The translations under genes were made by a program, and so were the position numbers. The notes below the pieces were generated by a model that saw nothing but the letters and a program-made list of their open reading frames with translations, was not told where the DNA came from and did no database searches. This document shows, piece after piece, positions 1,760-59,367 of a stretch of DNA of 64,000 bases. This DNA comes from Marsupella aquatica (lineage: Eukaryota; Plantae; Marchantiophyta), in NCBI GenBank assembly GCA_973895155.1, contig OZ316898.1:9685761-9749760 (forward strand), in the 5' to 3' direction. The stretch's first letter is position 1. Each line of letters starts with the position of its first letter.

Positions 1760-2900
1760 TCATGCCTTCCCACCAAAACCCCTACGCGTCTGCAAAATTT
1801 AGGCAACCTTGGTAGAGTTGCATCATGAACTTCTCTCAAGTTGTATTCATAAACCTGAGTACCACACTCAAATCCATACCAGAGTCTTGTGACGAGTGAA
1901 ATGGTTTCTTTGGAATTCCTCATTTCGTGTGATCGATGTCTAGACACCAAATTTCCGTGCCCTTGCAAAATTTAAGCAGCCATGTGTTAGTGATGCAACC
2001 TTCTTTACAGTGCTGTTCACGAACCCTTATTCTGCTTAGAAGGCCATCACCACTACTCCAGATTCTTATGAGAAGAGTTAACCCATTTACTCGATTTCTG
2101 ATTTTGGTATCAGCACTTATTGACAAGAAAATACAGTAGCTGACACTCCTCCAAAATTTAGGCAACACGTTCATCGAAATTTTCTTTATAATGCTCTTCA
2201 TGAACCTGAGTAAAGTGTTCTACTTAGAACGCAATCCTCATCATACCGGACTCTTGTGAGAAGGGTTATCCCATTTATTTATTTCTACTCTGGTGTCAGC
2301 ACGTATTGACGAGAAACCCCTGATGCTGTTCAGGAATTTCAGCAATGTCGAGATTTATCGTAAGAAGCTTTAGAATGCTGGTCGTGAACGTGAGTAGAGT
2401 GTTATACTTAGAAGACCATCCTCGCTATACCGGATTCTTGTGAAAAGGGTTATCCATCTGCTGTATTTATCATTTGGCATCACCACGAAGTCACAAGAAA
2501 CCCCTGATGCTCATCGCGAATTTCAGCAATGTAGAGATTTATCGTACGCTTCTTTAGAATGCCAGTAGCGAAATTGAGTACAGTGTTTTACCTAGAAGGC
2601 CATCCTCGCTATACCGGATTTTTGTGAGAAGGGTTTCCCATGTACTGTACTTCTCATTTGGCATCACCACGAAGTCACAAGAAACCCCTGATGCTCATCG
2701 CGAATTTCAGCAATGTAGAGATTTATCGTAAGCTTCTTTAGAATGCTGGTAGCGAAATTGAGTACAGTGTTTTACCTAGAAGGACATCCTCGCTATACCG
2801 GATTCTTGTGAGAAGGGTTATCCCATCTATTGTATTTCTCATTTGGCATCACCACAAATTGACAAGAAACCCCTGATGCCCTTCCAGAAATTAGGCATTC
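1760..2900. repeat. Tandem array of ~184-bp units (about 6 copies, more degenerate toward the 5' side)
   Basis: GAAACCCCTGATGC recurs at ~2313, ~2497, ~2681 and ~2866 with near-identical intervening sequence. Diverged units (CAAAATTTAGGCAAC-like) lie near 1790, 1965 and 2150. Confidence 0.9.
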
Positions 2901-4719: not shown

Positions 4720-4956
4720 GGCAAAGTAAGGTGAAGTCTAGACAACAATTCTGCAGACTTGCTTGTCGATTCTAGGCAAAGGAAAGTGAAGTCTAGGCAA
4801 CAATTCTTCAGTAGGAAGACTTGCGTGTCGATTCTAGGCAAAGGAAAGTGAAAATCTAGGCAACAATTCTGCAGTAGGAAGACTTGCTTGTCGATTCTAG
4901 GCAAAAGGAAAGTGAAGTCTAAGCAACAATTCTGCAGTAGGAAGACTTGCTTGTCA
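4720..4956. repeat. Tandem repeat, ~60-bp unit, about 4 copies
   Basis: AAAGTGAAGTCTAGGCAACAATTCTGCAGTAGGAAGACTTGCTTGTCGATTCTAGGCAAAGG repeats with small indels. Confidence 0.9.
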
Positions 4957-7129
4957 GAGGTAAAGGCGTGAACTCTCAAGTTCAAGAAATAAGTTAAGAC
5001 TGTATCAGCTAACATTGGCCTCATCACTCCAGGCCCCATCACTACGTTAGCGAGTAAATGCAAGATTGCCAATGTTGCACTTATCTTGGGAACTCTGCAG
5101 ATCTCATCCTCTCCAAATTTTATATTTATTTTTTCTTCTCTCCAGAAGTTAGAAGCTTTCGAGGATTCGTTATTCTGTCGCTTCTCGCTTTAGATTTTAG
5201 ATCCAATGGAGCACAATCATTGCCACTTCTATGAAAGGAAAGGGTTATATTTGGGTTTCACATATACCAATATCTCAATGTCAGAGGGGGCTCAATGCAG
5301 CTACTCCAGATTGTTCGGATTGGTGATCTAGATCTTATTCTACACTAGCCTGACTGCCCCCTTTCTGAATCTAATAGAGGCCAGTACAAAAACGACCTTG
5401 CCGAGAATTAGATTCCTTAGCGTTAACCCTTCAAGTTTAAATGTTTTCATTTGACTTGCCCCCATCCTTTCCTCTGGCACTTTGATATATATGTGACTTT
5501 AATTATCAAAAGAAAAAACTTTAAGACGATGTGGTACTAGGCATTGGACCCTATTCAGACCAATCCTTTAGGAGTTCATGCCCTTGGGGAAGTGATCATT
5601 GCAAAACCTATTGGTGAGAAAATGTTACAATTGTTGCCCATGTACCAGGCCATGCTGCAGGCAAGGTAGCTCAGATCAAAGAGTGGGCATATGTTACTTG
5701 TTACCCCAGGGATTGGTAACTTTTGGAGGTCTGTGGGGCACTTCACCTATATCTTACTTATAAAGTCCACAGGGAAGCTAGAGTTGGGGTCTAGGCTTCT
5801 AGAGTGAAGCCTCTAGATAATGACTCTAGGGCCCCATCAAAAATGTATGTGCATGGAGAGAATAGTAGGGCCCCACCAAAATTCATGTGCATGGAAAAAA
5901 TGATGTGTATAAAGAGAATGATGTATGTTAAAATGATGACATGTACCATGGTTTCTATCATCAAAGCTCACAATGACTCCATAGTGACTCTTAGTAAACA
6001 CAAAATTGAAAGTATGGTGGACAAAAAGATGGGGCAAAAATGAAAGGGAAACAGAATAGAATTATGTTGTTAGCAAAGTTTTTGGGGTTTTCATCTATCT
6101 AAGGGGGCAGGAATCAAAATCTACGGTGAGAGTGAAAAGGACTGGGTGGGGTGAGTTTTTGGAGGTTTTATGATGCAGCTAAACTATGGCTCATGTGTGC
6201 AGCAACATAACTTATAATACAAGGAAAATCCTAATTTCTTTTCTTACAAATTATCAAAAGAAGAAATGGACATAACAACAGTACGAGCCAGAGGAAATGA
6301 GAATAGAGGCACAAAGAAACTATAAGTGTTTGGTGCATTGCACTGCAATTTGGTTTAATTTTCAGCTGTTTCCATTTCCTGACCCTTGCTCCACTAAGTT
6401 TTAACCATGAAACTTTGTATCCTGGACCTTCCTCTTGATGGAGAAATCTCTCAAGTGGAGTTTCCTTTTCTATTTTGATACATTATGCTTCTTACACTCT
6501 AGAATATATTTTGTTGACACTTTATTGTCCTCACCCCGGTCCTCACCTCTATTCACGTTTGAGAACGGGTAGTGGGGCTAGTTTGACCTATTCTTTTGGG
6601 CTTCTGTAGTTTATTCTGCAAGGCAGAGCGCCAGTTCTGGTCCTCATTGGCTACTTTGAGTAGAGGGTGTCAATTGAAATACAAAGGGCTCAAGCATTCA
6701 CTAGTTTTTGGGGGCCTAGGCAGTTGGTTGTAGGGCCTCTGGTCAAATTCCTTGTCTTCACCTTCTATGCAATTCACTCCCACCGAGACTCCCACACTCT
6801 AACAAACTCATTAGTTTGTTGCTCAAGAGGGCTTTAGTTTGTTTGTTGTTGTTGGGGATTTTGGGGCATTTGGCTCTGTGGTCTTCCAAGGTTTCTCCCT
6901 TGTTTTTCCCCCTTTATTTGGTCTCTTGCCTTTGGGATTGTGTCTCCCAGTATGGCAATATTTATTCTTTAGCAGTGTTATATGTATTAAACATAGATAT
7001 ACATCTGATCAAATGTGTTTGGTCTCTTTAGTTGAGCGCCCTTACGCAAGATGGATTTTGGATGAGTTCCTTGGAAACTCATTTCTTGTTGCCTATTGGG
7101 TCCCCCCATTCAGTCTTGTTTGCTAAACC

Positions 7130-7420
7130 TTGTTGTCCATCACTTATAGAAGGTGAAGGCAAGAAGATGTTTTCTTCATATTTTTAGTGCTACCTACTGC
7201 ATGTGTGAGGATTTAAATAAGGGCAGAGTTTGCTTGATACCGGTCATCGATCCCAGCAAGTGTAGCCAAACAGTAGCAGTCTATTGCAGTAAGTGTGGTT
7301 CCAAGTTGAAGCTTCATCAGTAGACTAGCGTTTGCACAAACCTCGATTTCAAAGTGGGGTTCAGCAAAACTATTTGCACACAAAAGACTTGACACTTGGA
7401 AATTTGGAGGTCCCTCCCTT
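7130..7420 (-). repeat. Dispersed repeat fragment, homologous in inverted orientation to 48820-49105
   Basis: The minus strand reads TTTCCAAGTGTCAAGTCTTTTGTG...TGAACCCCACTTTG...TAGTCTACTGATGA...AACTTGGAACCACACTTACTGCAAT...TGCCTTCACCT, collinear with the plus strand at 48.8-49.1 kb. Confidence 0.75.
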
Positions 7421-7843
7421 ATCACCTAAATGGAAACAAGCAAGCAGCATCTACTAGTGAGACCCAACGGGTTGTATAAATGAGTTTCCTTTGAACAATC
7501 ACCTGAATCAAGAAAGGTTAATTTTACCTTTCACCAAGAAAAGCACGGCAACTACCCTGGGCTACATGGTCCATCATGATTCATTCAGTGCCCTTTAGCG
7601 AAAGGATAGTCCACCCATAGTTTGGAGAAGCTGTGTCCTCTGAATTTTGAGATTGATACACTACACGGGCGGAGGGACTCTGGTCAAAATCTAGAAAGAT
7701 TAGTGTCTCCACACCGAATCCTTTAGACAACCACATGGATGGGCAATCTGGTTATTTAACTTAAACAAACCTGCCTGTTAAGTTTGACAATGGATTGATC
7801 TTATCTGTAATGCTACATAAACACAAGTATGAACCATTTGAAC

Positions 7844-13624: not shown

Positions 13625-14959
13625 CTATAGCCGTTTATAGAGCATCAGCAATAAGAGACAAGCAAAAGGTAATTGTATCGACTGGTGAGCCAAGGATCCA
13701 AAGACCTCCCATTGGACATAAGAACCCGGGTGGAAGCGCAAAATCCACCCTTTTCTTGTATAACCTATTTGCTCCATTGTACTTTGTTTGGCCTTATCTC
13801 AGTAAATTGATCCTATTCAAGGGTTTCCTTGGATATTGCTTGCATACAATTTAGACAGGTTACCACAATTGACAAGGTAGATAGAGTGACTAGAAATTGC
13901 TTTATTTGGGTGCCAGATGAGTTGATGAACGTTGTGGTCCATGCAAAACATCAACTTCCAAATAATATTAATATTCCAAATATCATGCACATGCGCAGGA
14001 ATTGGAGGGCTCCCCATATCTAGACTCCCATGCACGTCCCTATTCACAAGCTTGAGTATGAATATCACAAGTTGTTGTTGCCAGAGAAATTAAGGCCTAT
14101 GGCTTCACATATGGAGTAGGTCATGAATGGTAGACTTCAATCACAAATTATCATATAGATTGAGCACGCAAAGATCACATCTCTCTCCACAAAAACCACA
14201 TCTCTATAATAAACCTCTATGGGCACCAATTCACTATGTAGACTACAGCAACCCTCAATCAAAATTACAAAACCCTCACCATGGAAGATGGCAGTAGTGA
14301 ACAATTAGAATGGCACACTATCGGGCATTTACTGATAGCCCTAGGATTAGAGAATTTCATAGGGATGAGCAGGTTTGCACATGCACAGTGCAAAACGATA
14401 ATATTTTGTCCCCGGATTTTGTCTTTTCAAGTATAGAATAAGCCATATATAATGTCTCTTGATTTCATCTTACTTTAACAAATGTAAATGTAAACACTGC
14501 TAAATATTGTTTAAGTCAATATGTCCATAGTACTCCTAAATTATGCATTGGAAATTGTTTCCAAGTGTCGCAAACATGACCTAAATTTCTATCCAAGGGG
14601 TCCAAAGTTTTACTAATTAATAATTTTTGGTGAAACCTGATTCCTATGGTAGAGAATTAGTTAAGTGCTGTATCTAGAATACATATTTTCTTCAACTTCT
14701 AAGTGTATAACATTCATCTGTAATCTTGTTTTAAATTTGGTATTTGCTGTCTGAGCCACCTGGCGAGTTGCACAGTTCTTTTGCTCATGCGGGAAACCCC
14801 TTCTTTCATAAAGAAAAAACACTTGCTGGTAATGCTATTGAAAGCACATAGACTTCTCGTCAACACTACCTAAATTTTAGTCCATGGGGTTCAATCAAAT
14901 TTCAATGATTAATTATTTTTGCCTGAACCCGATTACTATGGTAGAGAATTAGTCAAGTC

Positions 14960-17900
14960 TGTTGAGGAATGATGCAGGAAATGATAATGAGATTCCTCTC
15001 TATAGAATGAATGGGTGCATCTCTTTATATAGTCTCCGTCCGAGTTATCCTATACGGTAACTATGATTAAGGTAACCATGGAGTCTAGTTAGGGTATAAC
15101 ACTCCCCCTTGGCTATATAGTGATAACTATGTAGACAAAAAGTCTTCTAACTAGATTATCATGCTTATAAACATGGCATGATTTGAGTACAAATGAGGAA
15201 GGTATTGCCTCGTTAAAACCTTTAACAGCTCTAAAAAACTCTATCAGGGTAACAGAGAAGAAAAAAATAAAATATCTCGGCTCTAAAGGAAAAAGAGTAC
15301 AGCCCTGTCGGTCCTCAAGTGAATCCGGTGGTATGTGGAGTTAGCAGCAACAACTCCACTTCGTCAAAATGAACAAGTTGTCGTATGCTCAACGACTCAA
15401 CAACAACGCGACATGTCTCCAAATCGCTCACCATCGCGCATACATCCGCACATACATCCTCGCATCAAATACAAATTAAAACATATATGAAAAAATGATT
15501 AGTAATTAAGTTATTATCATAAAATCACTTGTCCGTGGCTCATCTGCGCAAAGTGTAATTAAAAGTATAATAATAAATAATGTCATCTCGTGCAACTGAG
15601 TGCGTAAAGTATGGGATGTAAAAAGTCCAAAAAATATGATCTCCCCTTCAAAACAAGGTTTCGAGGAATATATTATTCTCGTAAAACTCAAATATCGAAA
15701 ATCTCCCTTAGAGTTCAAGGACTCCTAATTAGATTCTTAAATAGAGGGTTCTTGTGCAAAATGCACAATTTGCAAGCGTGTGTAGTCGACACACAAAGAA
15801 ATCTCTCAATCTTAGATTTCAAAAACATGTAGTATCAAATAGTTTTTATGTGAAAAATAATCTGCAGCACCAAAGGGTGTGCATTCACAACACCAGCGGG
15901 TGTGTGTATAATATGGCACGTCTGCCCTACACGTCTGCAGTTCTCATATTTTGACAAAAAGTGTCAAGTCAATATAACTTCACAAATAATCCTGTGGAAT
16001 CCAAATATTTAGTCGAACGTCCATGTGTGTCATAGCACAGAGAAATGCTAGCTCAAAATGATTTGCTATCTTGCGGAGGTAAAGTGATATTCATAAACGT
16101 CAAACAACTCCGCATAAAAATAGTTTAGAGCTAGTGATAGTCAAAAGATCCCACTTAATGACCAAGTACCAAAATGTGCTCGTAGTGGGTAAATCAAGTG
16201 TGATTGGGGTTTGGGAAAATAAACTTTCTCCCCCTAAATATGCATTTTATGCATATATTATAGTTGAAAGCTAGAATTAAGTTGGACCGGACAAAGTTAT
16301 GGGGTTTGCCCATATTAACCCCTCATTACTCATTCTGATTTGAGTTTACTTCGGGTTTCTAAATATTCGCAGTTAAACCCCTAAAGGGTTATTGATTATC
16401 CGCTTTTGGATATGGCCGGAAACTAAGGTCATGGAACTAACCTGAAGTATTGTACCTTAGATTATTCTGGATCTTTCGTGAGAAACATATTTGTCATCGA
16501 TCACTGGATCTCAGAAAATCTATACCTTACCAAAATACCTCAAAAACTAGGTCATAGAGCATGGTTAAAGGTATGGTATTAGTTCCATACTTAAAAACTA
16601 TCATCCCACCGAACAATGGCTATAAAAGCTCTTGTTTGAGTTGTTTATGGTGTAAAGACCACGAGGATAAGACCCTTAAGTAAGATATTGCCCTAATGTA
16701 GGGTGTAAATGGGTGTAAACCCATGTCAATTGGTGTAAAAGTTGTAAATGGTCAATTTGCACACAAAAAGTGTATGGACCAAAGTTTATTCCCCCTGATG
16801 GTGTAAATTGGTATAAACCAGTGTAAATGCTATAAGGAAGTGTAATCTGGTGTAACCAGTGTAAACAAGTATAAACCCAATGTAAAGCATGGGATTATAC
16901 AATGGTAAGACATACACTAGTGTAAACTGGTGTCATGAGGTATAATCTAGGATGGTATCATTAGGTGTAAACTAGGGGTGTAAAATGGTGTAAAAATCAT
17001 TTTGTGATTGAAATGGGTGTAATAACCAGTTTGTAAATGGAAAGTAGAGGTATTTGGTATAAAACCATTATTTCCAATGTGCAAAGTCAAGTAAGGGTGG
17101 TATGACATGTAAATATGTCAAATGCATGTAAAGCATGTGTTGCACATGTAAGGCATGTTAATGTATGCAAATTCAACAAGTGACATGTAATTTCCCTAAA
17201 CCAGTTGATGTGTTTACATGTGTAAACTGTGTAAATTGCTGTGTAAATTTGCAATGTGCACTTATCATTTTCCATTTCATTTGTTTATCCATAAGTGCAA
17301 AACATCCATTGTCAACAAGATTTTCTTTGTTAATATGTGCATATATGGATAGTTTTTCAAAAATGAAGATTTTTCACTGAAACACATGGGATTCTCTTGT
17401 CTTTGGATAAGTGCACCCAAGCATTTGTATTTCAGAAACTCTTTACTATACTGTGCATTTAATGAGGGTTGCACTTATCTGGTGTTCGAGTTTTTCTCGA
17501 GGATTTTGAGATCGAATGTTGCATGTTTAAGTCACTCATGTGTGTCTCTTGAAATCTCACTTGTCGCTTTGGCTCATGCTTTGATTGCGATCAGCTTCTC
17601 AGGCTCATTCTTGGACAAGCACAACATTCCATATTTAGGATTCAGAAAATGCTATCAGATCTAGACCCCACAACGATGACTCGTTTCTTTCGCTGGATGC
17701 CATCTCCCGTACGTTCACGACCAAAGCCAAGATGTTCTTCCTCCACGACATTTGCTTCTATCTTCTCCAATTTGATACGACTGTATCAAATGGCTCTTAT
17801 TGGAATCTTCATTGAATCAGCAAACGACCAATTCAACATCCATGTTTGGCCTCTTGTAATGCCTATACTTCACTCGATCGTGTGTAATGGGCATTTCCTT

Positions 17901-18547
17901 TCATCCTTTATGGCTCGCAGATCGACCAACAAGAAACTGTCAGCGGTTGAGCAACATTGTGAACTTCAGGGAAAGAGAAGGCGCCTGCGTTCATCCCTTA
18001 TGAGGTTAGGGTTTTGAAAATTTTTCTTATGATCCCGATCGGGTCCTGATTTGCTCTCGATCCACCCGGCTTCATTCAAGGCTGTCTCTGTTTGGCTTCC
18101 GGTCTCTGTTCTTCTCTTTCTGCCTCTTGTTAAGGTTGTCAACTCATCGCCACGAGTGATTTAGGTTGATCTGGCCTGGTTGGGTAGAAGGAAGCAGCGC
18201 GGCTGAACTCGATCTCTCTCCTGTCGTTGCTTCAACGTGACTTATGTTCTCTTGGTGGTTCAAACTACTAGCCTTCTCACTCCCAATTCAATTCTCCTCC
18301 ATAACTTGGAAATCCTTAAGAGAACATTCATTCATCATAGCCATAGGGAAATTCCTAAAAAAATTCATGATCAAGCTTAGTTGGTCTAGAGTCGTGCTGA
18401 TAACGTGTTGAGGAATGATGCGGGAAATGATAATGAGATTCCTCTCTATAGAATGAATGGGTGCATCTCTTTATATAGTCTCCGTCCAAGTTATCCTATA
18501 CGGTAACTATGGTTAAGGTAACCATGGAGTCTAGTTAGGGTATAACA
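14960..18547 (-). mobile_element. Full-length non-autonomous LTR retrotransposon (Ty1/copia, Bianca-like priming)
   Basis: Two 142-bp TG...CA LTRs (14960-15101, 18406-18547) differ by 3 A/G transitions. A 5-bp TSD AAGTC sits at 14955-14959 and 18548-18552. PPT (minus strand AAGGGGGAG, 15102-15110) and PBS (minus strand CGTTATCAGCACGAC) abut the LTRs, and there is a TATA box CTATATAAAG in the LTR on the minus strand. The 3.3-kb interior has no gag/pol ORF. Confidence 0.95.
16690..17260. repeat. Degenerate (G)GTGTAAA / ATGTAAA motif array inside the LTR element
   Basis: Many TGTAAA/TATAAA variants at short irregular spacing. Confidence 0.75.
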
Positions 18548-18824
18548 AAGTCCTTTATCTCGTCCGCTCATGTATACAATATAACTTTTCCTCAACTTTT
18601 TCATGTATAACACTCATCAGTAATCTTATTTTAAGTGCGGGTTTATATATGCTGCTCGAGCCACCCGGCCAGTTGCAAAGTTCTTTTGCTCATTTGGGAA
18701 AACCCCTTCCTTCACCAAAGAAAAACTACTTGCAGGCAATACTGCAGAAAGCACATTTTCTCTTCCATACTTTTTGTGTGTAAAAGAAAGGGAACAGCCA
18801 TTTGACACAACAATTGAATCCAAG

Positions 18825-24574: not shown

Positions 24575-25825
24575 AAAGTTACTGTCCATGACCACAAATT
24601 TGATCCAACTTGGCAGAGGACACAAAGTCCATGATTCTACTTTAGTTGGGCAGCTTGCTCCAAGGTGGTTTCCCTTCAACAAATAAAGTATGGTTTAATG
24701 AAGAGGGATGGAGGGCAGACTCCAGAACTTTGTAAGACTAAGATACACACGAGACACTGTGGAGAGGAAAGCCTGTAGGAGGAGAGAACTCAGAATCATT
24801 CTAAGAAAGTTACTGTCCATGACCACAATTTGACAAACTTGGGAGTGGACATAAAGTCCATGATTCCATTCTAGTTGTCCAGCGTGCTCAAAGGTGCTTT
24901 CACTTTGACCAAATAAAATCCATGCGAGGTTTAATGAAGAGGGATTGGCACAAACAGTGAAGGTCTTATAAGTGCACACTCAGGAACTTTGTTCCATAAA
25001 TTAAGATACACATGGGACAATGTGAAGAGGAATGCCTGGAGGGGAAAGAGAACTCCAGAGTTATTTGAAAAATGGTTCATGACCACAATTTTGATAAACT
25101 TGGGAACATAAAGTCCACGATTGCATTCTGGTTGTCCAACTTGCTCGAAGGTGGGTTCCCTTTGACCAAATAAAGCCCATGAGAGGTTTAATGAAGTGGG
25201 ATGGAAAACAGTGAAAGGTCCAATGAATCCAAAAAAAAAAGACACATACGCTACAATGTGGAGAAGAAAGCCTGGAGGAGGAAGAGAACTCCAGAAGCAT
25301 CCTGAAAGGAGGTCCATGACCACAATTTTGATAAACTTGGGACTGGACTCCATGATTGAAATATAGTTGGGCAGCTTGCTCAAAGGTGGATTCCCTTTCA
25401 CTGAACAAATAAAGTCAATGAGGTTTAATGGGGAGGGAGGGACACAAACAGTGAAAGGTCTTATGAGTCCAATCAAATAAGATACACATGAGGCAATGTG
25501 GAGAGGAAAGGCTGGAGGAGGAAGAGAACTCGAGAATCATCCTGAAAGAAGGTTCATGACCACAATTTTGACAAATTGGGGAGTGGACTGCATTAAATTA
25601 TAGTTAGGCAGCTTGCTCAAAGGTGGTTTCAAAGGGAGGGGGGGGGGGGGGGGGAAGAAGGTGGTTTCACCTTTCATTGAACAAACAAAGCCTTGAGGCT
25701 TAATGGGGAGGGATAGACACAAAGGGTGAAAGGTCTTCAGAGCTTTGTTCCAATCAAATAAGACACACATGGGACAATGGGGAGAGGAAAGCCCGGAGGA
25801 GGAAAGAGAATTCTAGAATCATCTG
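24575..25825. repeat. Tandem array of ~230-260-bp units, 5 copies
   Basis: CATGACCACAATTTTGA(T/C)AAACTTGGG recurs at ~24588, 24818, 25078, 25315 and 25556, and each unit also carries GGCAGCTTGCTCAAAGGTGG and GGAGGAGGAAGAGAACTC variants. Confidence 0.9.
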
Positions 25826-35804: not shown

Positions 35805-36225
35805 GGCATGGGTTATAAGCTATTCAAGATTATCTCAATCCGTCCAAATTGGTCCTTCCAATTTGGGCTAAGGGGCTTCTTATCTTCATATTTGTCCTTG
35901 CCAATCTTTGCATGGTATGGGTTAAGGCTTTCAATCTTCATATTAGTCCATGCCAATTTTTGCCTGGGTATGGGGTAAAGGCTTCCAATCTTCATATTGG
36001 TCCGCGTCAATTTTGCATGGGTATGGGTTAAGGGCTTCCAATCTATACATTGGTCTGTGCCAATCTTTGCATGGGTATCGGGCTAAGGCTTCCAGTCTTT
36101 ATATTAGTCCATGCTAATTTTTGCCTGAGTATGGGCTGAAGTCTTCCAAATCTACAAAATTGGTCTTTGCCAATTTTGCCTGCTCATGGGTTAAGGGGCT
36201 CCAATCTCCATATAAATTGGTCCGT
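35805..36225. repeat. Tandem repeat, ~53-55-bp unit, about 7 copies
   Basis: Consensus GGGTATGGGTTAAGGGCTTCCAATCTTCATATTGGTCCGTGCCAATTTTTGCAT. Confidence 0.9.
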
Positions 36226-36569: not shown

Positions 36570-37200
36570 AGTTCGTTCCCGCGGGCACGACATGGGGTGG
36601 CCCATGATCAGAAACCTCCAAATTGCGGACAACAGAAGTGGACCAGACGTTTTTTTTTCTGCCCGGAAACCAGGAATTGGAGGGACGGCTTTGCTTTCCC
36701 GTGCCCGCGGGCAGGACATGGGTGCCCACTGTGCCCGAATGAGCAGAAACCTCAAAGGTGCGACGAACGGGACGGGACCCATTTTTTCTATTATTATTGC
36801 TGCCCCGGCGCCAGGAAAGGGAGCGACGACCCCTTTGTTTTGCGGTGCCCGCGGGCCGGACATGGGTGCCCGCAGCCCACGAATGAGGAGAAACCTCCAA
36901 AGTTGAGACGAACGGGACGGGGCCAGACTTTTCTCTTTCTGCCCGGACGCCAGGAATGGGAGCGACGACCATTTGTTTTGCGGTGCCCGCGGGCAGGACA
37001 GGGGTGCCCGCAGCCCACGAATGAGCAGAAACCTCAAAAGTTGAGACGAACGGGACGGGACAAGACTTTTCGATTGCTGCCCGGACGCCAAGAATGGGAG
37101 CGACGCCTTTGCTTTGCGATGCCCGCGGGTAGAACATGGGTGCCCGCAGCCCACGAATGAGCAGGCTCCTCAAAAGTTGAGACGAACGGGAGTACGGGAC
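36570..37200. repeat. GC/CpG-rich tandem array, ~138-bp unit, 5 copies
   Basis: GTGCCCGCGGGCAGGACATGGGTGCCCGCAGCCCACGAATGAGCAGAAACCTCAAAAGTTGAGACGAACGGGACGGG variants start at ~36576, 36701, 36845, 36983 and 37119. Confidence 0.9.
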
Positions 37201-38178
37201 GGGGCCATTCCATGTTTCTCTCTTGCTGCCCGGGCTGAGTAGGCTTTCGGCCTACATGGCCCGCAAGCTGAGTAGGCCGAAAGCATCGGGAGCAAGCTGG
37301 GTGCTTATTTCCGGTGCCCGGGTGAGGAGAGCATAAATAAGAGGGCGAAGGACGGAGAAAAAGGGTAAAGTACGAAAGACAGCATTTCGCCAGTACTTTG
37401 TACAGGACCACTCTCTGTAGCGGAGGCGTAATCGTAGTAAAACACGGCGAGTCCGTCAAAATCCCGATCCATCTGCAAAGACGCGGACGACAAGAGTCCG
37501 TGTTGATGATGATGCTCTTCGGCGTGGTGCTGAATGAACACTAGTAATAGAGGAAGACTCCGACGTTGAAAAATTCAGAACGAGCTCTCTCTCGCTCTCT
37601 GTGTTGAAGTCTGCCTTCTGCTCTTCGTCAATCATCACCCTTGCCTCGTCAATCTTCCTCCAGCTTCGCTTCACTTGCGGTGGCATTTTTGTTTGGCTTT
37701 GGTTATTTTTGGGCTGTGATTGATCGATGGATGGATGATTATTGACTTCGCTGCTCTCTGCCGGGGGAAGGAAGTATCTGGGTGAGGTGAGTTGAGAAGC
37801 AGCAAAGGCATCATCTGGCGAGAGTAGTATTGGTGGCAGCGGCAGGAGGGAATCCGGTTTGAGTGTGGCCCTGTGGGGTATTGGGGATGACTTCGCTGCG
37901 GAGGTACGAAGCTAGAAGAGAGTTGAGAGGGAAAGGAGTGCAGTAGTAGTGGACTGGACGCGGCACGAGGGGATCGCGTGAGAGAGGAGGGGAGGGAGGG
38001 AGGGAGGGAGGGAGAGGCGGAGAGAGGGGAGTTGACAAAGTAGTAGGAGCAGTGGTGTGTGTTGTGGGCGAGTAGAGAGAGTGGAAGACAGTCAAAGGTC
38101 GGTAGTCAGGGCACAGGACAACAGACGAGTGACCAGAGTGAGCTACACGCTCTCGTGTGAGATGTGCACACAGTAGAT

Positions 38179-49105: not shown

Positions 49106-51229
49106 AAGTCATACTCTTTTACACTTGGCATCCAACATCATCCATCCAGGAGCATTGATCCAGCAGCAGCAGGGGATCCAACATCAGCAGCAGCAAGGTG
49201 GCAGCAGCAAGCATATGGAGAGGCTCAACTTTAAGCTTCAATTTGCAGCATTGAGCTCAAGTAGCAGCATTAATAAGAGCTTTTGGCAGTAGTCAGCAGC
49301 AGCATCTAGCAGCATTGATCAAGAGCATTTTACTGGAGTCACAGTGATTTTTATTTTTTGACTAAAAGGTTTTTTCAAACACTACTTTTAAGGTAACTCA
49401 AAATTTAAAGCTACAAGGCTAATTGGCCTTTCTTTTTTTCATATGATGCTTACATGGCAAGCTCTAATAGGTAAAAAAAAATGGGTTTCTTAGAAACAAA
49501 AGCGTGGATGGACCGAGACATTGTCCCTGCCCATCCCCGTGGACTGTGTAAGCCAATCCTTGCTTTTACACCGAAAAGAAAAAGGAACCTATTGCAGATC
49601 ACAGTTAACTACTTTGATTACCTTGGGGAGAAAGTAGTCAAGACATCATGGTGATCTTGAGTAATGACATGACGTCTTCAAGGTTGTCCAGTTACCAAGG
49701 AAACCGGCTAGGTATTGTAATTGAAACCTGTTGCAAATGATAAGGAGACAGTTTACAGGTCACATTTAAATCAAAAGTGTAAACAATGTTATCTAAATCC
49801 AGTTTAAATAATTAAAGATTCCAAGCAGGTCCATCCAAGCTTTGCCAGTGCATCTGGGCTTCAGTTTAGGGTTTCTCGAGACTGCAAGTTACTGTGTAAC
49901 ATGCATTGCATGACATTCATTGCACTGTAAAGGTCGGCGCAGGGGAGGGCAACACTTGGGGGAAGTGCCTGAAAAGCTGCGCTGACTTTCAACAAGGGCT
50001 GCTGTGATCTGTGGGACCATTAATAATATTTCGGTTGTCCACAGCTCAGGACTTGCATTCTGAATGAGACCCACAATGCGCAACAGAACGATGGTGTCGC
50101 TCAGGGCAGGGCTGACTGGCTGATGAGTGAGCTGCAAGGAAAGTATTACGAAAGAAGGTGGCTGGAGCGGATGAGATCGTTAATTACGGAATAACATCGC
50201 AGCCTTCTGTCATGATTGTTCTGCACTTCAGCTGCTGACGTACCTTGGCACCTTGCTGTGGACATCAGAAGTGTGTGTCATGGTCTGGAGCGGAGAGAGT
50301 GACTGCGATTTGAGTGGTGGCCTGGTTCTCAGAGCGGAGTCTCCTGTCCAGCTTAATTAACGGAATTGAAGAAGGAAGAGAGGAGGTGAGGACAGTTGGA
50401 AACAGAAGGAAGGAACAACGGAAGTGAGGAACGCGAGGGAGACAACTGGACCGTGCTTCTCTCCAGTCGGGCACAGCGCATTGTAGGTAAATTGTCAGCT
50501 TGGTGCCATTTCATTCCTGTTTCTGGGAGTGAGCTCACGGATTTGGCTCCCAAGTACATCTATGGTGGAATGAATCAGGACATTGAAGAGGAAACTGGGT
50601 TTGCAGAGTTTCTTAATTGTAAATGATTATGATTCATCTGCGGTCGAAGGTCAGCACATCGACTACGGACTGATTTGCTGGGTGGTTTTGCAAGCAGGGC
50701 CGTGAACGTTGTACGCTGTGGTGCTTTCCGGGGTTGCTGGGAAGGAAGGCATTGGGAATTGGAGCATGAAGGGTTTCAGTGCTGGGTTCAGGTGGGGCAA
50801 CTCAGAAATGGAGCAAGGTTGGGAGCAGGGTAGCTCATCTATGATTATCATTGTACGACTAGAAGGCTCTACTGGATAGGCTTTTGGCGTGGAATATATG
50901 GAACATGTACGAAGGAGCACATTTATATCTCATTTGGGCTGCGTTGCTAGATTGGATTTTCATCGGTCTGTTGCCTGAATCGGCCTGTGGATTCGTAAAG
51001 CGGGGAGGTTCTGGGGAGTCCAACACAGCATGATAGTGGCTCGGGGATTTAGTGAATCGACAAAGATATTTGGATCTGCAGGTTGTGTTTGGGAACTGGA
51101 AATGTGCTTCTCCACCAGTTCTGAAGGTGTGGGCGTCAGCTCCCGTTGGTATTGTCATGATTGCCGAGGATCTCGTCTGTCGAGATCTTGTTGTTCGCCT
51201 GGGATTGTGAAGCATTATTGGAGACAAAG

Positions 51230-54200
51230 ATGACCATTGAAAGTTTTGAAGTTGAGAAGCCGTGGGAGGAGCAAGGGTACGTCGACGTCGAGGATGAAAA
51301 CATAGACGGCCGTCCTCCGACTTGTGCTGGGCACTCATATTGCTTATGCCAGCAGCTCACGCAGAGTGGATTCTTGCGCAAGCTGGAACGAGCTGCTAGC
51401 ATTCATTTCGACTGGTGGGCTTAAAATATCTACGATTTGTTTAGCATTTTTATTGTCTGTAATTATTTCTGAATCCGGTTTTAGATAGTGTGGTACCTCT
51501 CCTGAAGCTGTAATTTGGTGACAGCACCGCCTAATCTTTATTAAGGAAACGACAGTTGGTACTTGTGTGTGGCGAGCTCAAGAAGTTCAATTTAAATGCT
51601 TCTCCGAGACGGTTTTTTAATTGAATTTTGAAAGATGTGGTGCCATTGTGAGTAACGAAGCTGAAAAATAACATTTGGCCGCGAGAGGGGAGAAAATATT
51701 AGTAACATTAGAGGGAGAGTAGAATTGCGGTTTTCATGTCAAAGGCATGCTCTGGCGACTGACGAGAGGCCTTTTTCAATGATTTGTTCCGTGTGTGGCA
51801 CAACTTGTTTCCGTTCAGGCTCACGTTCTGTAAAGAATTTGTGTACCACACATTTTTTCCATTCTCTCTCCCACTTATGATCCGTTTGGAGGGCGGTACG
51901 AATGGCATAATCAACCGTCAGTTTTGGGGAAGTCGCATGAGTGGCGTACAATGGTTTCTTTCAACATGCTGTGAGTACATTTCTATCTGCAAGTCGCCGT
52001 CATAAAACATTTTCCTGTCCTGTGACGTTGAATTATCAGATAAAGTAAACTTAGGGCATTCCTGAAATGTTGGAATTGGAATGGCACTAAAAGTCAACCC
52101 TCTTGTGAACTCTGATCAGTTGGCGTTGAACCTATCAGATGGAAACATGAGAGTCATTGACTGGTCCGATTGGTGTTGACTAATCACTGAACACGCGTGT
52201 CCTTGCGTTTGTGTCGTGCAGTTTTTATGTTGAACTGCCTCACTTTTCTCTATGTAAGTCCCGACATCGTCATTGTAGACATCCTCTGGGTTCTGCGCAA
52301 TATGGTAGGGTGATAACTCTACTGTAATTCTTCTCTATTTGACAAAGTGCAGCAACTGGTCATGCAGTTTCTGTTAGTCTAGTAGTACTGCTTGTCACGA
52401 TGGATCCAACTTTTGCTTTTTCTATTCGGACTCGCAGTAGTTTGCTCTTTTTCTTGGAAGGAAGCAAGAGTTTTGTTGTTTGGAGTCCTTGACGAGCATA
52501 TGTAGTAACCTCCTTTATTGATGTTAAACTCAAAACAGATCCTTGCAACCAAATATGGGTTTATCAACAGGGGAGAGATGCAGGAGATGAGACGACGAGT
52601 ACTTCCATTGCAAGTTCATATGGATCGCACGGTGTGACCGCTCTTCCTATGTGACTTCTAGATTCCTCTGAGTAGAATTCTAGAACTCGTGCATTTGGTT
52701 TGATGCTGGTCGTGGACTGCTTTTTATCAGAAGCAAGTGGTGCTGACGTTTTGTGTGTTGTACAGCTTGTATTAGCGTGGACAAACCCAATTCCTTTACG
52801 AGTCATAAAGAGGGAGCTGCTTCTTTCTGCTGCCCGTAAAGATCAGATTCGATGCACCGCTACACTACATCTCATTCCAGGAGCCTCAAATAAGACAGTG
52901 CAGACGATTATGGACCAACTTTCATCAATTTCAGAAAGGGTACGCTACTTTTCAAGAGTTCATGCATGAAACCCCATGACTTCAAGTTCTTTCCTTTTTC
53001 CAAATCTGTGTGTACCTTGGATAGAGCTTCTGAGTACCTTTGCATGTTTTGCTCAGCAAGACCAGCTCGACGACAGCATACCAAGCCCAACTCCTGGGGA
53101 AGGATCAGGATGGGGGAGATTTCTGGATGCAGAATTCGGTTTCAATCAAAACTTCCGTCCTTGTCCAGATTGTATACGACACGGTTGCACCAAGAGCCTA
53201 TTTGAAGATAGATGGATTGATATATCCATCTCCAAAATTTCTTCCGAGCCAGGAATGTTTGTCCCTAAGGAGGCATCTAGTGTAGCAACCCATGAATCAG
53301 CTCATGCCTCCCAACGAAGTGATACAACAGACGATAAAGCTTGCGTGGCTCTTGACCTTCCAGCTCTGTTGGTAGCAGCGTATATCGTTCAGCGGGCGGG
53401 TGACCTATTAAAGTGAGTTCTGAAAATGTCCTTTGTGCGATTTTGGCCCTGAAGTTCAGTCTTTGTTCTCTGATAAAGAAATGTTCTGAAGTCTAATACC
53501 CTATAGGAAGACTTTGGTCAATTGATGTATCCGTGACTTCGTCGAGTCCATCAAACAAACATATCTTGGTTCCCGATAACAACCAATCTAGTTTTTGCTG
53601 GCTCTGATTTTCAGGAAGAAGAACTTTCTGCATCAGATTTTCTCCAGTCCTTGGAGAGTGTATTGGACGTCAGCAGCAGTTGCTTTTGTGCGAAGCATAA
53701 TACCTTTTGCAACTCGTGCAATAACCGGTATGACATTTATGGCCCTGCAGTATGATATCATTTGAGACTATGAATGTCGGTAATTCTAATCTGCTTACAA
53801 TAGATCTTGTTTCCTGAATATAAGCACATTACTCCCTCCAAAACAATTGTGTTTAACTTGTCCTCTGAGTCTTAGGAACTTCTGACCGAAGCCATCATAA
53901 CTAGCAAATTCTGTCGTTTATTTCCTTGCATTTATTATTTGTTCAACCACGTCTGTAAGATAGACACAACTCCTTCAAGTCGTTTACTCTCAATATGTAT
54001 AAAGCAACCATAATAGTAACCTACAATAAAGTAGCTCTAAAGGACATTTGTTTTTCTATGTAGGTAAACCTTCAACATTTGGAGGGGGCAAGTGGTACCA
54101 TTTTGTTATCTCGATCAGCAGTTTTTGTATCAGCTATTCAGCAATGTGAGTTTAAGTAGTCTGGATGTGTTCAAGAAAATGTTTCCTGGCCTTGTCCTTT

Positions 54201-56714
54201 GCACTTCTTTATTGTCTTCAAGTGCTGTCCAGTTTTGGTGATTGTTCCAACTAGTCTCTGTCAGTAATAATTGGCTTTATTGTGAAAAATTCCCGATCAA
54301 CAGTGTCAAGAAGGCAATTGACAAACTTATTTAGATTCTCGTGTCTTCTGGCAACAATGAAGATTTTGAGTTCGTGAGTTATCTGCTGAACAGGTCAGCG
54401 AGTGTCATGTTTATGCTAGCAGGATCGGCTGATTTTCGTAGGAAATACTTTACTGCACGGCTGCTGAACACAATGCTAAAGGATGGCTGGTACGGGGACG
54501 AGAAACTCCATCCTCAAAAACGCGAGAAACTAAGGCAGCTGAACCTTCTTCAGCAAAAGTCTGTCTATCATCTGGGACTCACTGTTGACTTCACAGATCC
54601 CCGATCTATTGCTGGATGGTGGGCTGCTAGAGTGTTAGTTCAGGACTTTGGTACGGTGTTCTACATGAGGGTGAAGGTAAGGAGCCCCATTTTCGAGTCT
54701 AGGAAGCTATCTTTGTAGCAACTCTAGGTTTCTGGTCTGTGTGTTTGGTAGAGCATGTCTGGATTTAGTGGAGAATCTTCTTTTCCAAAATATTTTTTCA
54801 TAGTTTACTACTTCAGTGCATAGTAAGTCTGCAGGTAAGAAAATGCACTGTGACGAATGGTCAGATGGATCTTTTAAACTAACTTTGAAAAGTTATTGAA
54901 TGTTGAAATAGCAACTGTGTTAGATTTGTAACCGATTTTTTTCCGACCCTGTTGTTCCAGTTCCTGTAGGTATCTTGAAGAGTGAACTTCGGGAAAAAAA
55001 AAATCTAGGGGAAAGGTCTGTTTGACTAATATCATTTGCTGCTGAGTGGGATTTCTGATGTCCTTTCTCCCTGTGATGCAGCAATATGCCAGTTATTTTG
55101 CCATGTACTGTGCTCTGCTCATGGGTTTTCTGATCGTGGAGCTTTTTGCAACGGGTGCACGTACGAACATATATATCCTGTGAGTACCTCTTGTTTTTAG
55201 TTACTCATGGGAACGAGAATATTGGTGATCCAAGAGTCTAGACAAATTATTGCATGATCCGTTAAACTATTAAAGCAAATCATGTTTCCTTACTGCGCAC
55301 CCGGACTGTCGGCTCTTCTTATTTGTCGTGGTCTGTACAGACTCTGTCCACGTAGGGGGAAAATGATACTATGCTAGATTATTCTTTGCTTATGTGACCT
55401 GGTTTGGTGGGCTGAGGACATAAGAGTCATGCGTTTATCCCAAATAGGGGAGCACCGATCTGCCGGCCATTCTGATTTATTAATTTTAATTTTGGTTGAA
55501 CAGGGCGATTGTCGTTTATGACCTGTTCGTCTTTGTATTCCTGCTGTGTCTCATGGTCTTCCCCGGTGGAGAGGCAAATGATATGAATCATCAACATGGA
55601 GCAACTCTTGTCCGTAAGAAGGTGATTTGTTTTAACCCTGCTATCCTTCACCTTCCCCCGAGCAATCCCTCGGCTACTTCTTTTCCCATCCCTTCTCCTT
55701 TGTGGTCGCAATGAATATGTATGCCTCATTGCCAACGCTGGATCGTTATTACGCTCCTGGAAGAAGACACGCTGGCCCGACGTGCTTTCCGAAAAATATA
55801 GGCAAGAACAGTGCATTCGGGGCCAAGATGAAAAACTTATGTGGAGCAGGTACTTGAGGGTCTTTGCCGGTACGAAGGATCTAAAGGTCGAAAATAGCTT
55901 GTAGATTCCCGTACTCTAACGGGTGAGAGAACTCAGGCCAATAGGTCGTTTTGGTCTTTATCATTGATAGCACCTTTAGAAAGGGGAGAATATTCGTACC
56001 CAAATTTCTGATTACGTTCTATTTCGAGCACTACTTCAATGAAAAATGTTTGAAGTATCTAAACCATTCACGTTTTGCAAACCTCAAAGAGGTGTATTTT
56101 CGGAATACTTTTATCGAATGCTTTTGGCTCCAGAAGTTTGGAGGATGAAGTTTGGAGGATGGTTTTCTTTTTCAATCATGCTACTCATAAAGCGACTGAG
56201 AGGGTATGTCTGATGGGTGCCTGACTAGAATTTGGTTTGAACGACAGATGGTGATATCCAACAAAGTACACTGCACTGTGGAGGATATGCATCCGCGAGA
56301 TCGAAAAATACTGGCTATATCGCTTGAAGTGTTGCAGTCTATTTCTCAAGCTGTTTATTGGGAGAATATCACGAATAAGGTACTGGGCTTTCACTCTGCA
56401 ATGTTGACAGTGGTTGGGGTATCTATGCCCTTCATGTGGTAGTTAGACACAACCTGCTTTTTGCATACATCAAAACAGTTACATTAGGCTGAATCATTAT
56501 GACAGCACAATGCTTAGTTTAGCAACTCCTTGTAAGCTCACAGATCGTGACTAGTGTCCCGCTCAAATCGGACCGTGACTGTGTAACATTGGAATTGCAG
56601 GTAACTATTCTTGGTATCACTGCTGGGGGTGAGTTGATCGCACTTTTAGTTGGTTTTGGAAGTGCCGCCATTGGCATTGCAGCTCAACAACTAACTTCCA
56701 AAATAAACAATTAA
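51230..56714 (+). CDS. Multi-pass membrane protein, about 660 aa, 13 exons; PHTF-like candidate member of the 7TM ion channel (insect OR/GR-like) superfamily
   Basis: Exons 51230-51414, 51819-51970, 52222-52304, 52539-52631, 52766-52939, 53057-53412, 53615-53727, 54064-54145, 54394-54676, 55082-55179, 55504-55621, 56248-56379 and 56601-56714. All 12 introns are GT-AG and phase-compatible, total 1983 nt with no internal stop, and an in-frame stop (51158-51160) precedes the ATG. Seven hydrophobic segments have a long loop between TM2 and TM3. The gene model is well supported; the family call is inference from recalled motifs. Confidence 0.85.
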
Positions 56715-59367
56715 CTTCCAGAATATGCCCTCTAAAAACTACCGGCACATTTGTTTTAAGTAGGTGAGATTGATGGTCTCTCTGCTCGTCCATAATTGTG
56801 GATCATCCTCGCTGATGTTTGATCCATTCGAGCTGTTGTCAATGACAATGGCAGCAAAGTCTGGCATTTGTGTATCGATTGGAAACAAGCTTAAGCAAGT
56901 TTGGAAACAGGGGAGCTTCCTATAACATGGAAAGACGAGTAGCGAGCACTTAGGATGAGGAATTGGCTGAACCGTTTAGTTTTGAGGAACAAGGGACTCA
57001 TGTAAAGACAGCGGACTTAGACGTGAGCTCTCAAATATTTTGTAGGATAGAAAGAAGAACATCTCAACTCAATTAAAAATCGATTGAGCATCAATGAAAT
57101 CCTTACAATTAGGGGATGGTGAGATGCTTCTTCGCAAGAGGTGGTCAACCTGAGCATATATTTGATCGAGTAATGTTGGCGTTTGATGTGCTTGAGCTTG
57201 TGTAGTTGCATATTATGGAACCTTTGTTCAATGCTTTACTTGCAGGAGAACTCAGGGATTCGCCAAATGAGCCATAATCACAAAAGCATCCCTTCAAAGT
57301 TTCACTTAATAACCTTTCAATTGTAATGGATTGGGATCACTGAGTAACCATTGTCGATTGTGATGACTGTTTACGTGCATACGGTGGGGGATTTTGAATG
57401 AGAATGTGTACCCCATGTGTTGCATTACTGCCACAGGTGGATGAGAAGATGTTCTACTGCCGTCGTGGATCTGAGTATTATACGTGCCTGGTTATGAAAG
57501 ACGTCATATCAAGATCACACATTAGTGACTGGGTATCCTAGTGGACTTGGTGGGAGTCACTGCAATGACATATCAATTTAGAGGGGAGGATGTGTTACGC
57601 GAGCACGGCTTTGAAACCCAGGGTTAAGTAAGGTTTTGAGGTTGCTTTGGCCTCCCAATCGCAAAGTAACCCAACATGTTGCTCTCACAGTTCCATGACG
57701 GTCTAAAATTGCATACAGCAAGTTGACCACTGGAAGTCTCCTGCTTACAGGATGTTCACAGCTTAGCACAAAAACAGGAACAATCAGAAGCTACTGTGCT
57801 GTTCTCTTTGAGCACATGATTAAGATTGTGCATTTGGACATCGTCACTCTGTAAATAATATCGCGGATGGTGGATATTGTGAAGGTACTTTACATTCGCA
57901 TGGTCTACGCATTGCCTCGCAGAAGGGACAGTATCTGCCTGAATGCCTTGGCACAATTCTTAATTAAGGCAAACGACCTTCTGTTACAAATCACTTGCAA
58001 GTTCTTGCTGATCACTCTACCTCGTGGATCAAAAAATTTGAGAGTATGGTTAAGGTATTTAAAACCTAGCATATGGTGCATTAAAGGCTTCTCCAGTTGG
58101 CCACAAGTCAAAGGTATGGTGCACTGCTGTAAACCTTACAACTGACCCAAAGAGGTGACCAAAAAAGGTTGTCCAACATCTAAGAAACTCTTTCCCCAGG
58201 TCCATACTCTACCTACCGATCTATAAACCTGTACTTACAGAGGATGGCGCAACATGCAACACTTCTTTCGTAGGTTAGAACTCCACCACGAACGATCTAT
58301 ACTTGGTTTTAAAGACCCGACCCAAGAAGAGCATGACAATCGTAAGCCCGAAGCGGTTCACACGGACGTCTCCCTCGGGGCACTTCCGGCTTAAAAACCG
58401 TTACGCCTGCAAAAAACCTACGCTAAATCCTAACCTCCCAATCGTTTTTCAGACAAGATTCATTGTTCCCCACATATACCGTAGAGTGAGATTTAAGCTT
58501 TCGTTATGCACTATATAGCGTTTTTGATTTGGTCATGCGTTGTGCATTAGTCCAATCCTTCAATTAAGGAAGCGTGGGCAAAGTATCGCCGTGGCAGCTC
58601 GCAATTAATAAAGAGCCAAGCCTGCAAGTAGAGAAGAACAAGAAAACAAGTGGCATTGTTCATTCTTGTCATTTTTGAGTTTTCAAACGGATTAAGAAAT
58701 CTCCTCCGCTAAGAGTTATCTGCAGGCCCTTCATGCTAATATGTAAAGTTCAGAGCTGCAGAATCTCCACCGAAGGTAGCCTCCACGGGGAGAAAATGGC
58801 ACACCAGTAACGTGGTAGTGTGGATAGTCCACAATCACGTCATTAGTATGATTGTCTGAGCGTCAGTGGTGGGATCCTATATCCTACACACACCGTCAGG
58901 ACATTCCACACCAGTATGAGCTCTCTGGGTCAATTACCTGTTTAATTCAAAAGTTTCAATGGTCCTTACATCCACAAACCCCTTTCCATTAGGAGCTTTT
59001 GAGCCACTTACTGTTGAAGGCATGCCATAATAGCATGAACTTGTCTGAAAAGGTTTCCAGGCTTCCGCTTGTTCAGATGCAATTTGGGTTCTCGCACTCA
59101 AATGATTTCCATCTCAAAATCAGTATCCCTCCCGGTCTGAACGTAGCAGGGGCATTACGTTTCGGTAGCCCCACATCAAGGTATGAGGCATCCTTCTCAA
59201 TGTTCAGCCAACTCCGTGGACATCAACTTAGGGGGCGTCAAAATGAATCCGGAGGTCTAGTTGGTTGCTTCTCGTGACACCAACCCGTGTTGTACCATTG
59301 TAGTGTGAACGCATCTGACCAGGAAACTTGACAGCTTGCTGATGCATGAAACATCTCCATACTCAGC

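Follow-up and report, generated by a model that had tools for sequence, protein, structure and literature searches.

An intact leafy liverwort gene encoding a seven-transmembrane protein with a probable 7TMIC fold

We analysed a locus on the + strand of Marsupella aquatica, at positions 51230-56714 of a 64,000-nucleotide stretch of DNA that we refer to as the window. Thirteen exons at this locus join into a 1983-nt frame with a single terminal stop, which encodes a 660-aa product. AG and GT flank every exon, and all introns of the gene are GT-AG. An earlier note on this DNA had described an intact 660-aa, 13-exon product, and the peptides that it quoted were all recovered in our translation in the order stated. 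A search for Rfam families across 50500-57500 gave no matches. The exons, the parts of the protein that they encode and the evidence for each are as follows.

51230..51414, + strand: exon 1; ATG and aa 1-61 plus 2 nt, a variable acidic N-terminus (first ATG downstream of a stop, and a GT donor; maps to the annotated Calypogeia start)
51819..51970, + strand: exon 2; conserved S0-like helices (aa 62-98) ahead of TM1, and the first part of TM1 (AG/GT; pLDDT 81-93 in the orthologue model; strongly conserved among 17 relatives)
52222..52304, + strand: exon 3; end of TM1, short outer loop, TM2 (splice flanks, orthologue model, hydrophobic cores)
52539..52631, + strand: exon 4; end of TM2 and start of intracellular loop 1, IL1 (splice flanks; 94.6% nucleotide identity to Calypogeia)
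52766..52939, + strand: exon 5; conserved helical segment of IL1 (splice flanks, conservation, orthologue model)
53057..53412, + strand: exon 6; variable IL1 with a conserved Cys pair, then a strand and a hydrophobic helix before TM3 (pLDDT mostly under 50 across the variable region)
53615..53727, + strand: exon 7; TM3 (hydrophobic core 361-379 in Calypogeia orthologue numbering)
54064..54145, + strand: exon 8; the short second outer loop and the first part of TM4 (splice flanks, orthologue model, hydrophobic cores)
54394..54676, + strand: exon 9; membrane part of TM4 and its cytoplasmic extension (DFRR motif), IL2, then a strand and W-W-x-x-R helix leading into TM5 (splice flanks, exon-alone search, conservation)
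55082..55179, + strand: exon 10; TM5 (splice flanks, orthologue model, hydrophobic cores)
55504..55621, + strand: exon 11; TM6 and its cytoplasmic extension, invariant P-G-G-x-x-N (splice flanks, orthologue model, conservation)
56248..56379, + strand: exon 12; TM7a, a cytoplasmic amphipathic helix, W-(D/E)-N motif (splice flanks, orthologue model, conservation)
56601..56714, + strand: exon 13; hinge with invariant Gly, TM7b with invariant Gln near its outer end, stop codon (splice flanks, orthologue model, conservation)

A genomic alignment was used to transfer the 13 exon coordinates to the locus in Calypogeia fissa. The resulting coding sequence corresponded exactly to the annotated 658-aa protein (P0017), and 12 of 12 introns were GT-AG. 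The two proteins are 84% identical. Nucleotide identity was 87.7% over the exons, where the sole indel is a 6-nt, in-frame difference within exon 1, versus 69.9% over the introns, which contained 956 gap columns. The dN/dS ratio between the two genes was 0.226 overall and 0.28 in IL1; the TM3-7 core, at 0.16, was the most constrained part. A Sphagnum transcript contig aligned to the Sphagnum genome in 13 blocks, and 10 of its 12 junctions fell at the positions seen in the window; the other two were displaced by 3-5 residues, at places where the alignment was imprecise or the HSPs overlapped. Moreover, the window product retains 70 of the 72 columns that are invariant among 17 relatives. The locus carries an intact gene on which purifying selection acts. 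Its host is a leafy liverwort, with Calypogeia fissa as the closest relative sequenced so far, which agrees with the early-diverging land plant proposed in the earlier note. Four public runs contained the Marsupella locus, all as DNA contigs, and no splice joints for it were present among them. Two of these runs resemble Hi-C libraries, with GATC ends.

The gene had also been called hidden. It is a real gene, but that description is overstated because orthologues are already annotated in several mosses and liverworts (Marchantia, Riccia, Calypogeia, Physcomitrium, Ceratodon and Sphagnum), where they are labelled hypothetical proteins; three Riccia orthologues carry the automatic UniRef name 'Odorant receptor'. 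A phmmer search of 1.84 billion representatives with exon 9 returned 14 matches, and all those with a named source were bryophyte. Unnamed Logan fragments aligned to the same family, and the weakest match was a low-complexity repeat protein. An alignment-based homologue search recovered known members and no new ones. As far as these sequence searches reach, the family appears to be restricted to mosses and liverworts. It comprises two paralogue clades that predate the moss-liverwort split and are both present in Marchantia polymorpha (orthologue MARPO_0001s0433, paralogue Mp4g16350) and in mosses; the window gene groups with clade A. One weakly matching fragment (P0013) was considered as a non-bryophyte member and rejected, being a moss clade-B gene. 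Ac45-VOA1, VID27 and Raf1, the genes next to the orthologue in Marchantia, had no tblastx match in the window. Pfam searches at E values up to 10 returned nothing for 10 of the 13 exons (1-7 and 9-11) or for 17 full-length members. A literature search yielded no paper that connects either these genes or bryophytes with PHTF or 7TMIC and no named bryophyte-specific family, and the eLife supplements held no bryophyte names. The family has no Pfam model and, by literature search, no published description.

The 7TMIC superfamily is ancient and brings together the smell and taste receptors of insects, plant DUF3537 proteins and animal PHTF; function has been established for the insect receptors only. 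We took the criteria for 7TMIC membership from Benton & Himmel 2023 (PMC9998090) and applied them to structure models of the Calypogeia orthologue (clade A) and of a paralogue, while searches with the window gene itself were made exon by exon. The orthologue model contains seven hydrophobic helix cores (100-118, 126-144, 361-379, 401-419, 509-527, 537-555 and 631-649); the paralogue model has the same set, and the hydropathy of the window product agrees. Outer loops in the orthologue model measure 4, 13 and 7 aa, as against 215, 88 and 74 aa for the inner loops, and Lys and Arg total 59 on the proposed inner side versus 4 on the outer, which by the positive-inside rule predicts an N-in/C-out orientation. 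TM4-6 are long in both the orthologue model (393-440, 48 aa; 480-527, 48 aa with one kink; 535-586, 52 aa) and the paralogue model (336-384, 443-491 and 495-551). Their hydrophobic cores span only about 19 residues each, and the remainder reaches into the cytoplasm in the manner of the anchor domain. TM7 is split: in the orthologue model, helices 593-619 and 630-657 are separated by a break at 620-629 around an invariant Gly, and in the paralogue model helices 557-583 and 595-621 flank a break with a short hairpin. The N-terminal region measures about 95 aa. Between TM2 and TM3 lies a long IL1, counted as residues 146-329 to the pre-TM3 helix or 146-360 to the TM3 core; the loop of about 200 aa previously noticed after TM2 accordingly measures 185-215 aa in the orthologue model.

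When the PDB was searched by structure with both paralogue models, all eight insect odorant and gustatory receptor (OR/GR) representatives, and nothing else, rose above the short-fragment background. These matches covered 76-93% of target residues (289-334 aligned), and the alignments to BmGr9 terminated at the invariant TM7b Gln in both models. A sequence-profile search of the PDB gave no match. The insect OR/GR fold that the earlier note had proposed is thus borne out in the predicted models by seven TMs, a split TM7 and whole-domain PDB matches to OR/GR only. We conclude that this intact liverwort gene most probably encodes a seven-TM protein with the 7TMIC fold.

Where the family belongs within the superfamily is answered less firmly. 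It may plausibly be a divergent Class-A member that either arose from DUF3537 or is its sister, and in which the long IL1 and extended N-terminus were gained in the bryophyte ancestor. Whether the whole protein or its core was compared, DUF3537 was the nearest named protein-language-model family, with scores of 0.92 that serve as leads only, and it belongs to the same kingdom. Compared by eye, ungapped and unscored, the TM7a-hinge segment shares 6 identical and 5 similar residues of 18 with DUF3537, and the TM7b tail is 32 residues long versus 30. However, the PF12056 profile had no match even at E 10 among ten exons of the window gene and 17 members, and the architecture differs, with 660 aa and an IL1 of about 185-215 aa compared with about 430 aa in DUF3537.

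By analogy with insect ORs and GRs, four subunits would assemble through the TM4-6 and TM7a extensions. TM7b would line a central cation pore; this helix has a high content of Gly, Ala and Ser, and at its outer end the invariant Gln precedes a hydrophobic residue. A ligand in an outer TM2-4/6 pocket would open the pore, and the 185-215-aa IL1 would serve regulation or partner binding. We offer this tetrameric, ligand-gated channel as a tentative candidate mechanism. It may also be that the protein has the 7TMIC fold and is no ligand-gated channel; its large cytoplasmic loop could, for example, let it act as an ER or endomembrane scaffold or regulator, a role discussed for rat PHTF1. Demonstrated channel activity among 7TMICs is confined to insect ORs and GRs, PHTF1 is predominantly ER-localised, and IL1 has strongly conserved segments under purifying selection (dN/dS 0.28). 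On the other hand, the putative pore-lining helix, hinge Gly and outer Gln are invariant in both clades, and the strongest constraint falls on the TM3-7 core rather than on the loop. A conserved pore and anchor would leave such a pattern, which does not in itself prove conduction.

The earlier note had assigned the gene to the PHTF rather than the DUF3537 lineage. Part of this stands, in that a long IL1 is a hallmark of Class B (Himmel et al., bioRxiv 10.1101/2023.08.30.555482), whereas Pfam, the language-model neighbours and the TM7 hinge do not fit. That the family is a land-plant branch of the PHTF-like, Class-B lineage, unrelated to DUF3537, is in our view doubtful. The long IL1 is the sole PHTF-like feature tested that was found, and a long loop could come from an independent insertion. 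None of the 17 members matched Pfam PHTF, and PHTF was absent from the 30 nearest named language-model clusters, which included seven of DUF3537 and several of 7tm_7. Judged by eye, DUF3537 is the better fit both in its TM7a-hinge motif and in how far the hinge lies from the C-terminus, and the published PHTF tree is without plants. It is improbable that mosses and liverworts keep a PHTF-like Class-B lineage absent from the other plants searched, with the two paralogues as ligand-gated cation channels in a motile-sperm or other chemosensory pathway. Least probable is that the OR/GR likeness reflects chance or convergent packing of long helices in an unrelated membrane family, given that two independently predicted paralogue models single out the same eight receptors with high coverage, that topology, anchor-type extensions and split TM7 all agree, and that DUF3537 and Gr are indicated independently by language-model features.

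DUF3537 is the only 7TMIC described so far in plants, and the present finding adds a second, well-conserved family with a probable 7TMIC fold and two paralogues. Since both paralogues occur in Marchantia polymorpha and in genetically tractable mosses, the role of a non-insect 7TMIC becomes directly testable. If the family is PHTF-like, the PHTF lineage would extend into land plants; if these proteins are indeed PHTF-branch channels, they would be the first plant members of that branch, and Marchantia knockouts could offer a tractable model for human PHTF1/2 function.

Among known systems, insect ORs and GRs (Orco, MhOr5, BmGr9, Gr43a and Gr64a; Pfam 7tm_6/7tm_7) provide the sole whole-domain PDB matches to the liverwort models, at 6-11% sequence identity in structural alignments and with no Pfam match. 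The liverwort protein differs from them in its extra TM2-TM3 loop of 185-215 aa and its N-terminus of about 95 aa, and it lacks the T-Y part of the GR signature. PHTF and Class B (PMC9998090; bioRxiv 10.1101/2023.08.30.555482) have in common with it a 7TMIC core, a long IL1 and an extended N-terminus. PHTF also lies at a similar structural distance from Orco, and some of its short motifs after TM4 and before TM5 resemble those of the liverwort protein by eye. However, PHTF has no detectable sequence or Pfam relation to it and is not a language-model neighbour; IL1 exceeds 300 aa in PHTF compared with about 200 aa, the TM7 hinge and C-terminal tail are unlike, and the published PHTF set is without plants. 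DUF3537 (PF12056; Class A) is about 430 aa long, lacks the long IL1 and occurs in angiosperms, whereas the present family was found in mosses and liverworts only. DUF3537 is likewise a plant 7TMIC, and its TM7a-hinge-TM7b motif and tail length are, by eye, like those of the liverwort protein.

Re-splicing of the window sequence from coordinates rebuilt a gene of 13 exons at 51230-56714 on the + strand, flanked by AG acceptors and GT donors, whose joined exons total 1983 nt, contain no stop codon but the terminal one and encode the intact 660-aa protein that the earlier note had described. Each peptide landmark quoted there was recovered in the order claimed, namely W-L-T-F-C-K ahead of TM1, the junction between R-N-M and I-L-A-T-K-Y, TM3, D-F-R-R-K after TM4, the W-W-A-A-R segment, G-G-E-A-N and the split last helix. 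The window sequence was searched exon by exon, and the joined translation was used in local comparisons only. Projection of the 13 exons onto the aligned locus of Calypogeia fissa gave a coding sequence that translates exactly to the annotated orthologue P0017, with GT-AG at every intron; this protein is 84% identical to the window product end to end, while other annotated orthologues are 42-53% identical. Exons of the two loci are 87.7% identical with one in-frame indel of 6 nt, as compared with 69.9% identity and 956 gap columns in the introns, and dN/dS, 0.226 for the whole coding sequence, falls to 0.159 for the TM3-7 core. No splice joints for Marsupella aquatica were found in the four public runs containing the locus, all of which are DNA contigs. 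A 2.9-kb Sphagnum contig, however, carries an uninterrupted 683-aa ORF and aligns to the 4.8-kb genomic gene in 13 blocks; 10 of the 12 junctions fall at window junction positions, and two are displaced by 3-5 residues, one inside the variable loop, the other where HSPs overlap by 17 nt. The exon architecture therefore has RNA-level support from a relative.

The locus and its surroundings contain several further features. Upstream of the start codon, 49941-50415 and 50731-51229 are 68-75% identical to the Calypogeia locus, suggesting that a 5' UTR or promoter is conserved there, and similarity ends at 57128, about 400 nt past the stop codon. Intron 11 contains a high-copy repeat of 100 bp (55740-55839), where contig depth is approximately 360-770 in all of the four runs but X2, where it is 94, versus 14-100 alongside; contigs break on either side, and Rfam returned nothing at this position. 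In both runs labelled organism B, 45 bases of intron 7 (53903-53949) are swapped for a different 10-base string, and many single-base differences are spread across the locus, exons 1, 2 and 13 included; these runs derive either from another accession or from a closely related sister taxon. Direct repeats of 142 nt (14960-15101 and 18406-18547; 98% identical, 3446 nt apart), adjoined by a second, weaker pair (14741-14800 and 18646-18705), may be the termini of a small mobile element. Tandem arrays are also present.

Tandem repeat arrays in the window
2170-2897, period about 184 nt
4727-4977, period about 63 nt
24620-25816, period about 240-280 nt
35919-36149, period about 54 nt
36684-37241, period about 138 nt

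A phmmer search of 1.84 billion representatives with exon 9 alone (94 residues) returned 14 matches, several of them full-length proteins, and a word-indexed search with the first of these recovered annotated orthologues of 603-699 aa.

Orthologues recovered by word-indexed search
Riccia sorocarpa
Marchantia paleacea
Marchantia polymorpha, MARPO_0001s0433, 660 aa
Calypogeia fissa, P0017, 658 aa
Sphagnum, Physcomitrium and Ceratodon

The claim that the gene is hidden thus fails, since related genomes already annotate it as a hypothetical protein. Three otherwise hypothetical Riccia homologues (P0002, P0053 and P0054), with no recorded Pfam domain, carry the automatic UniRef name "Odorant receptor", so a naming pipeline had already caught the resemblance. 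A maximum-likelihood tree of 17 relatives and the window product resolved two clades with 100/100 support, and since each contains both mosses and liverworts, the duplication is older than the moss-liverwort split. The window product is sister to the Calypogeia protein in clade A, and it carries conservative substitutions at two positions that do not otherwise vary (Lys for Arg in D-F-R-R-R, Glu for Asp in W-D-N); after the hinge Gly it has Ile where Phe is near-invariant in the family alignment. Sequence searches, including the 94-residue phmmer query, identified no non-bryophyte member; every match with a named source came from a moss or a liverwort, and a weakly matching fragment was traced to a moss clade-B gene. 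By current searches, whose phmmer query was short, the family appears bryophyte-restricted, and members may yet occur elsewhere, hornworts and other flagellate-sperm plants included. An F-box/FBA gene (6374-7528 of moss contig L008, from SRR10916128) lies about 1 kb downstream of the clade-B paralogue there and is encoded on the other strand.

With E allowed up to 10, Pfam still returned no family for the ten window exons scanned and 17 full-length relatives, and no PDB sequence was matched by the family profile. Structures were predicted independently for the two clades.

Predicted structures
Clade A, Calypogeia orthologue P0017, alignment A2: mean pLDDT 69, pTM 0.72
Clade B, Marchantia paralogue Mp4g16350, alignment A3: mean pLDDT 74, pTM 0.74

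In both models pLDDT in the helical core was mostly 75-93. Foldseek matches with probability of about 0.7-1.0 were exclusively insect GRs and ORs, albeit with weak E-values (0.002-0.3), and interspersed rows from other families had probabilities of about 0.5 or less. Under the qualitative 7TMIC criteria of Benton & Himmel 2023 (PMC9998090), we counted seven hydrophobic cores, with outer loops of 4, 13 and 7 residues versus inner loops of 215, 88 and 74, and 59 Lys+Arg on the inner side versus 4 on the outer. The TM4, TM5 and TM6 helices span 48-57 residues each, about 19 of them hydrophobic, and both models and the family alignment place a break at an invariant glycine between cytoplasmic TM7a and membrane TM7b. 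By protein-language-model features, DUF3537 clusters, which make up 7 of the 30 best named ones, lie nearest to the TM3-7 core (score 0.92), with insect 7tm_7 clusters also near at 0.87-0.88. Because of the Foldseek matches, topology, language-model neighbours and "Odorant receptor" names, we accept the predicted 7TMIC fold as well supported, in agreement with the earlier note; the first three make chance helical packing unlikely.

The proposal of a PHTF rather than a DUF3537 lineage was not confirmed: the long TM2-TM3 loop is present, but neither a PHTF Pfam domain nor a PHTF language-model neighbour was found. PHTF and DUF3537 motifs from published supplements were set by eye against the family alignment, unscored, and serve as leads, not tests. 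A relationship to Class A (DUF3537) is plausible, if somewhat short of an even chance. At the TM7a-hinge the family has Y-W-D-N, four residues and V-T-I-L-G-F-T, where DUF3537 has Y-F-E-N, four residues and I-T-V-F-G-F-T; by eye, ungapped, 6 of 18 positions are identical and 5 of 18 similar, a much better fit than to PHTF, and hinge to C-terminus is 32 residues in the family, 30 in DUF3537 and more than 40 in PHTF. Membership of Class B, defined as 7TMICs with an added long TM2-TM3 loop (Himmel et al. 2023, bioRxiv 10.1101/2023.08.30.555482), seems to us doubtful. The loop at residues 146-329 fits that definition, an N-terminal region of about 95 residues also speaks for it, and by eye the motif F-R-R-R-Y-F-x-A-R following TM4 and the spacing W-x3-R-x6-G ahead of TM5 are PHTF-like; however, the PHTF Pfam domain was undetected in 17 full-length relatives, PHTF clusters were absent among the 30 best named clusters for the TM3-7 core, and the published PHTF tree comprises animals, Capsaspora, Guillardia and oomycetes, with no plant. 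A separate lineage takes up whatever probability these two readings leave.

The fold and superfamily are already known. The apparent novelty lies in a second 7TMIC-fold family in plants, one whose architecture is Class-B-like and which no paper found by literature search names.

To our knowledge, conduction has been proven for no 7TMIC outside insects. In the models, conserved parts of intracellular loop 1 (IL1) appear to make up, with a short strand ahead of TM5, a small cytoplasmic element that may have a role in gating regulation or partner binding. By analogy with ORs and GRs, cytoplasmic extensions of TM4-6 together with TM7a would form an anchor joining four subunits, TM7b would line a central cation pore, and, seven residues from the C-terminus, an invariant Gln with a hydrophobic residue after it would act at the outer gate. 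In both models this Gln is the last residue aligned to BmGr9, opposite BmGr9 residue 444, within one residue of the GR Q-F gate.
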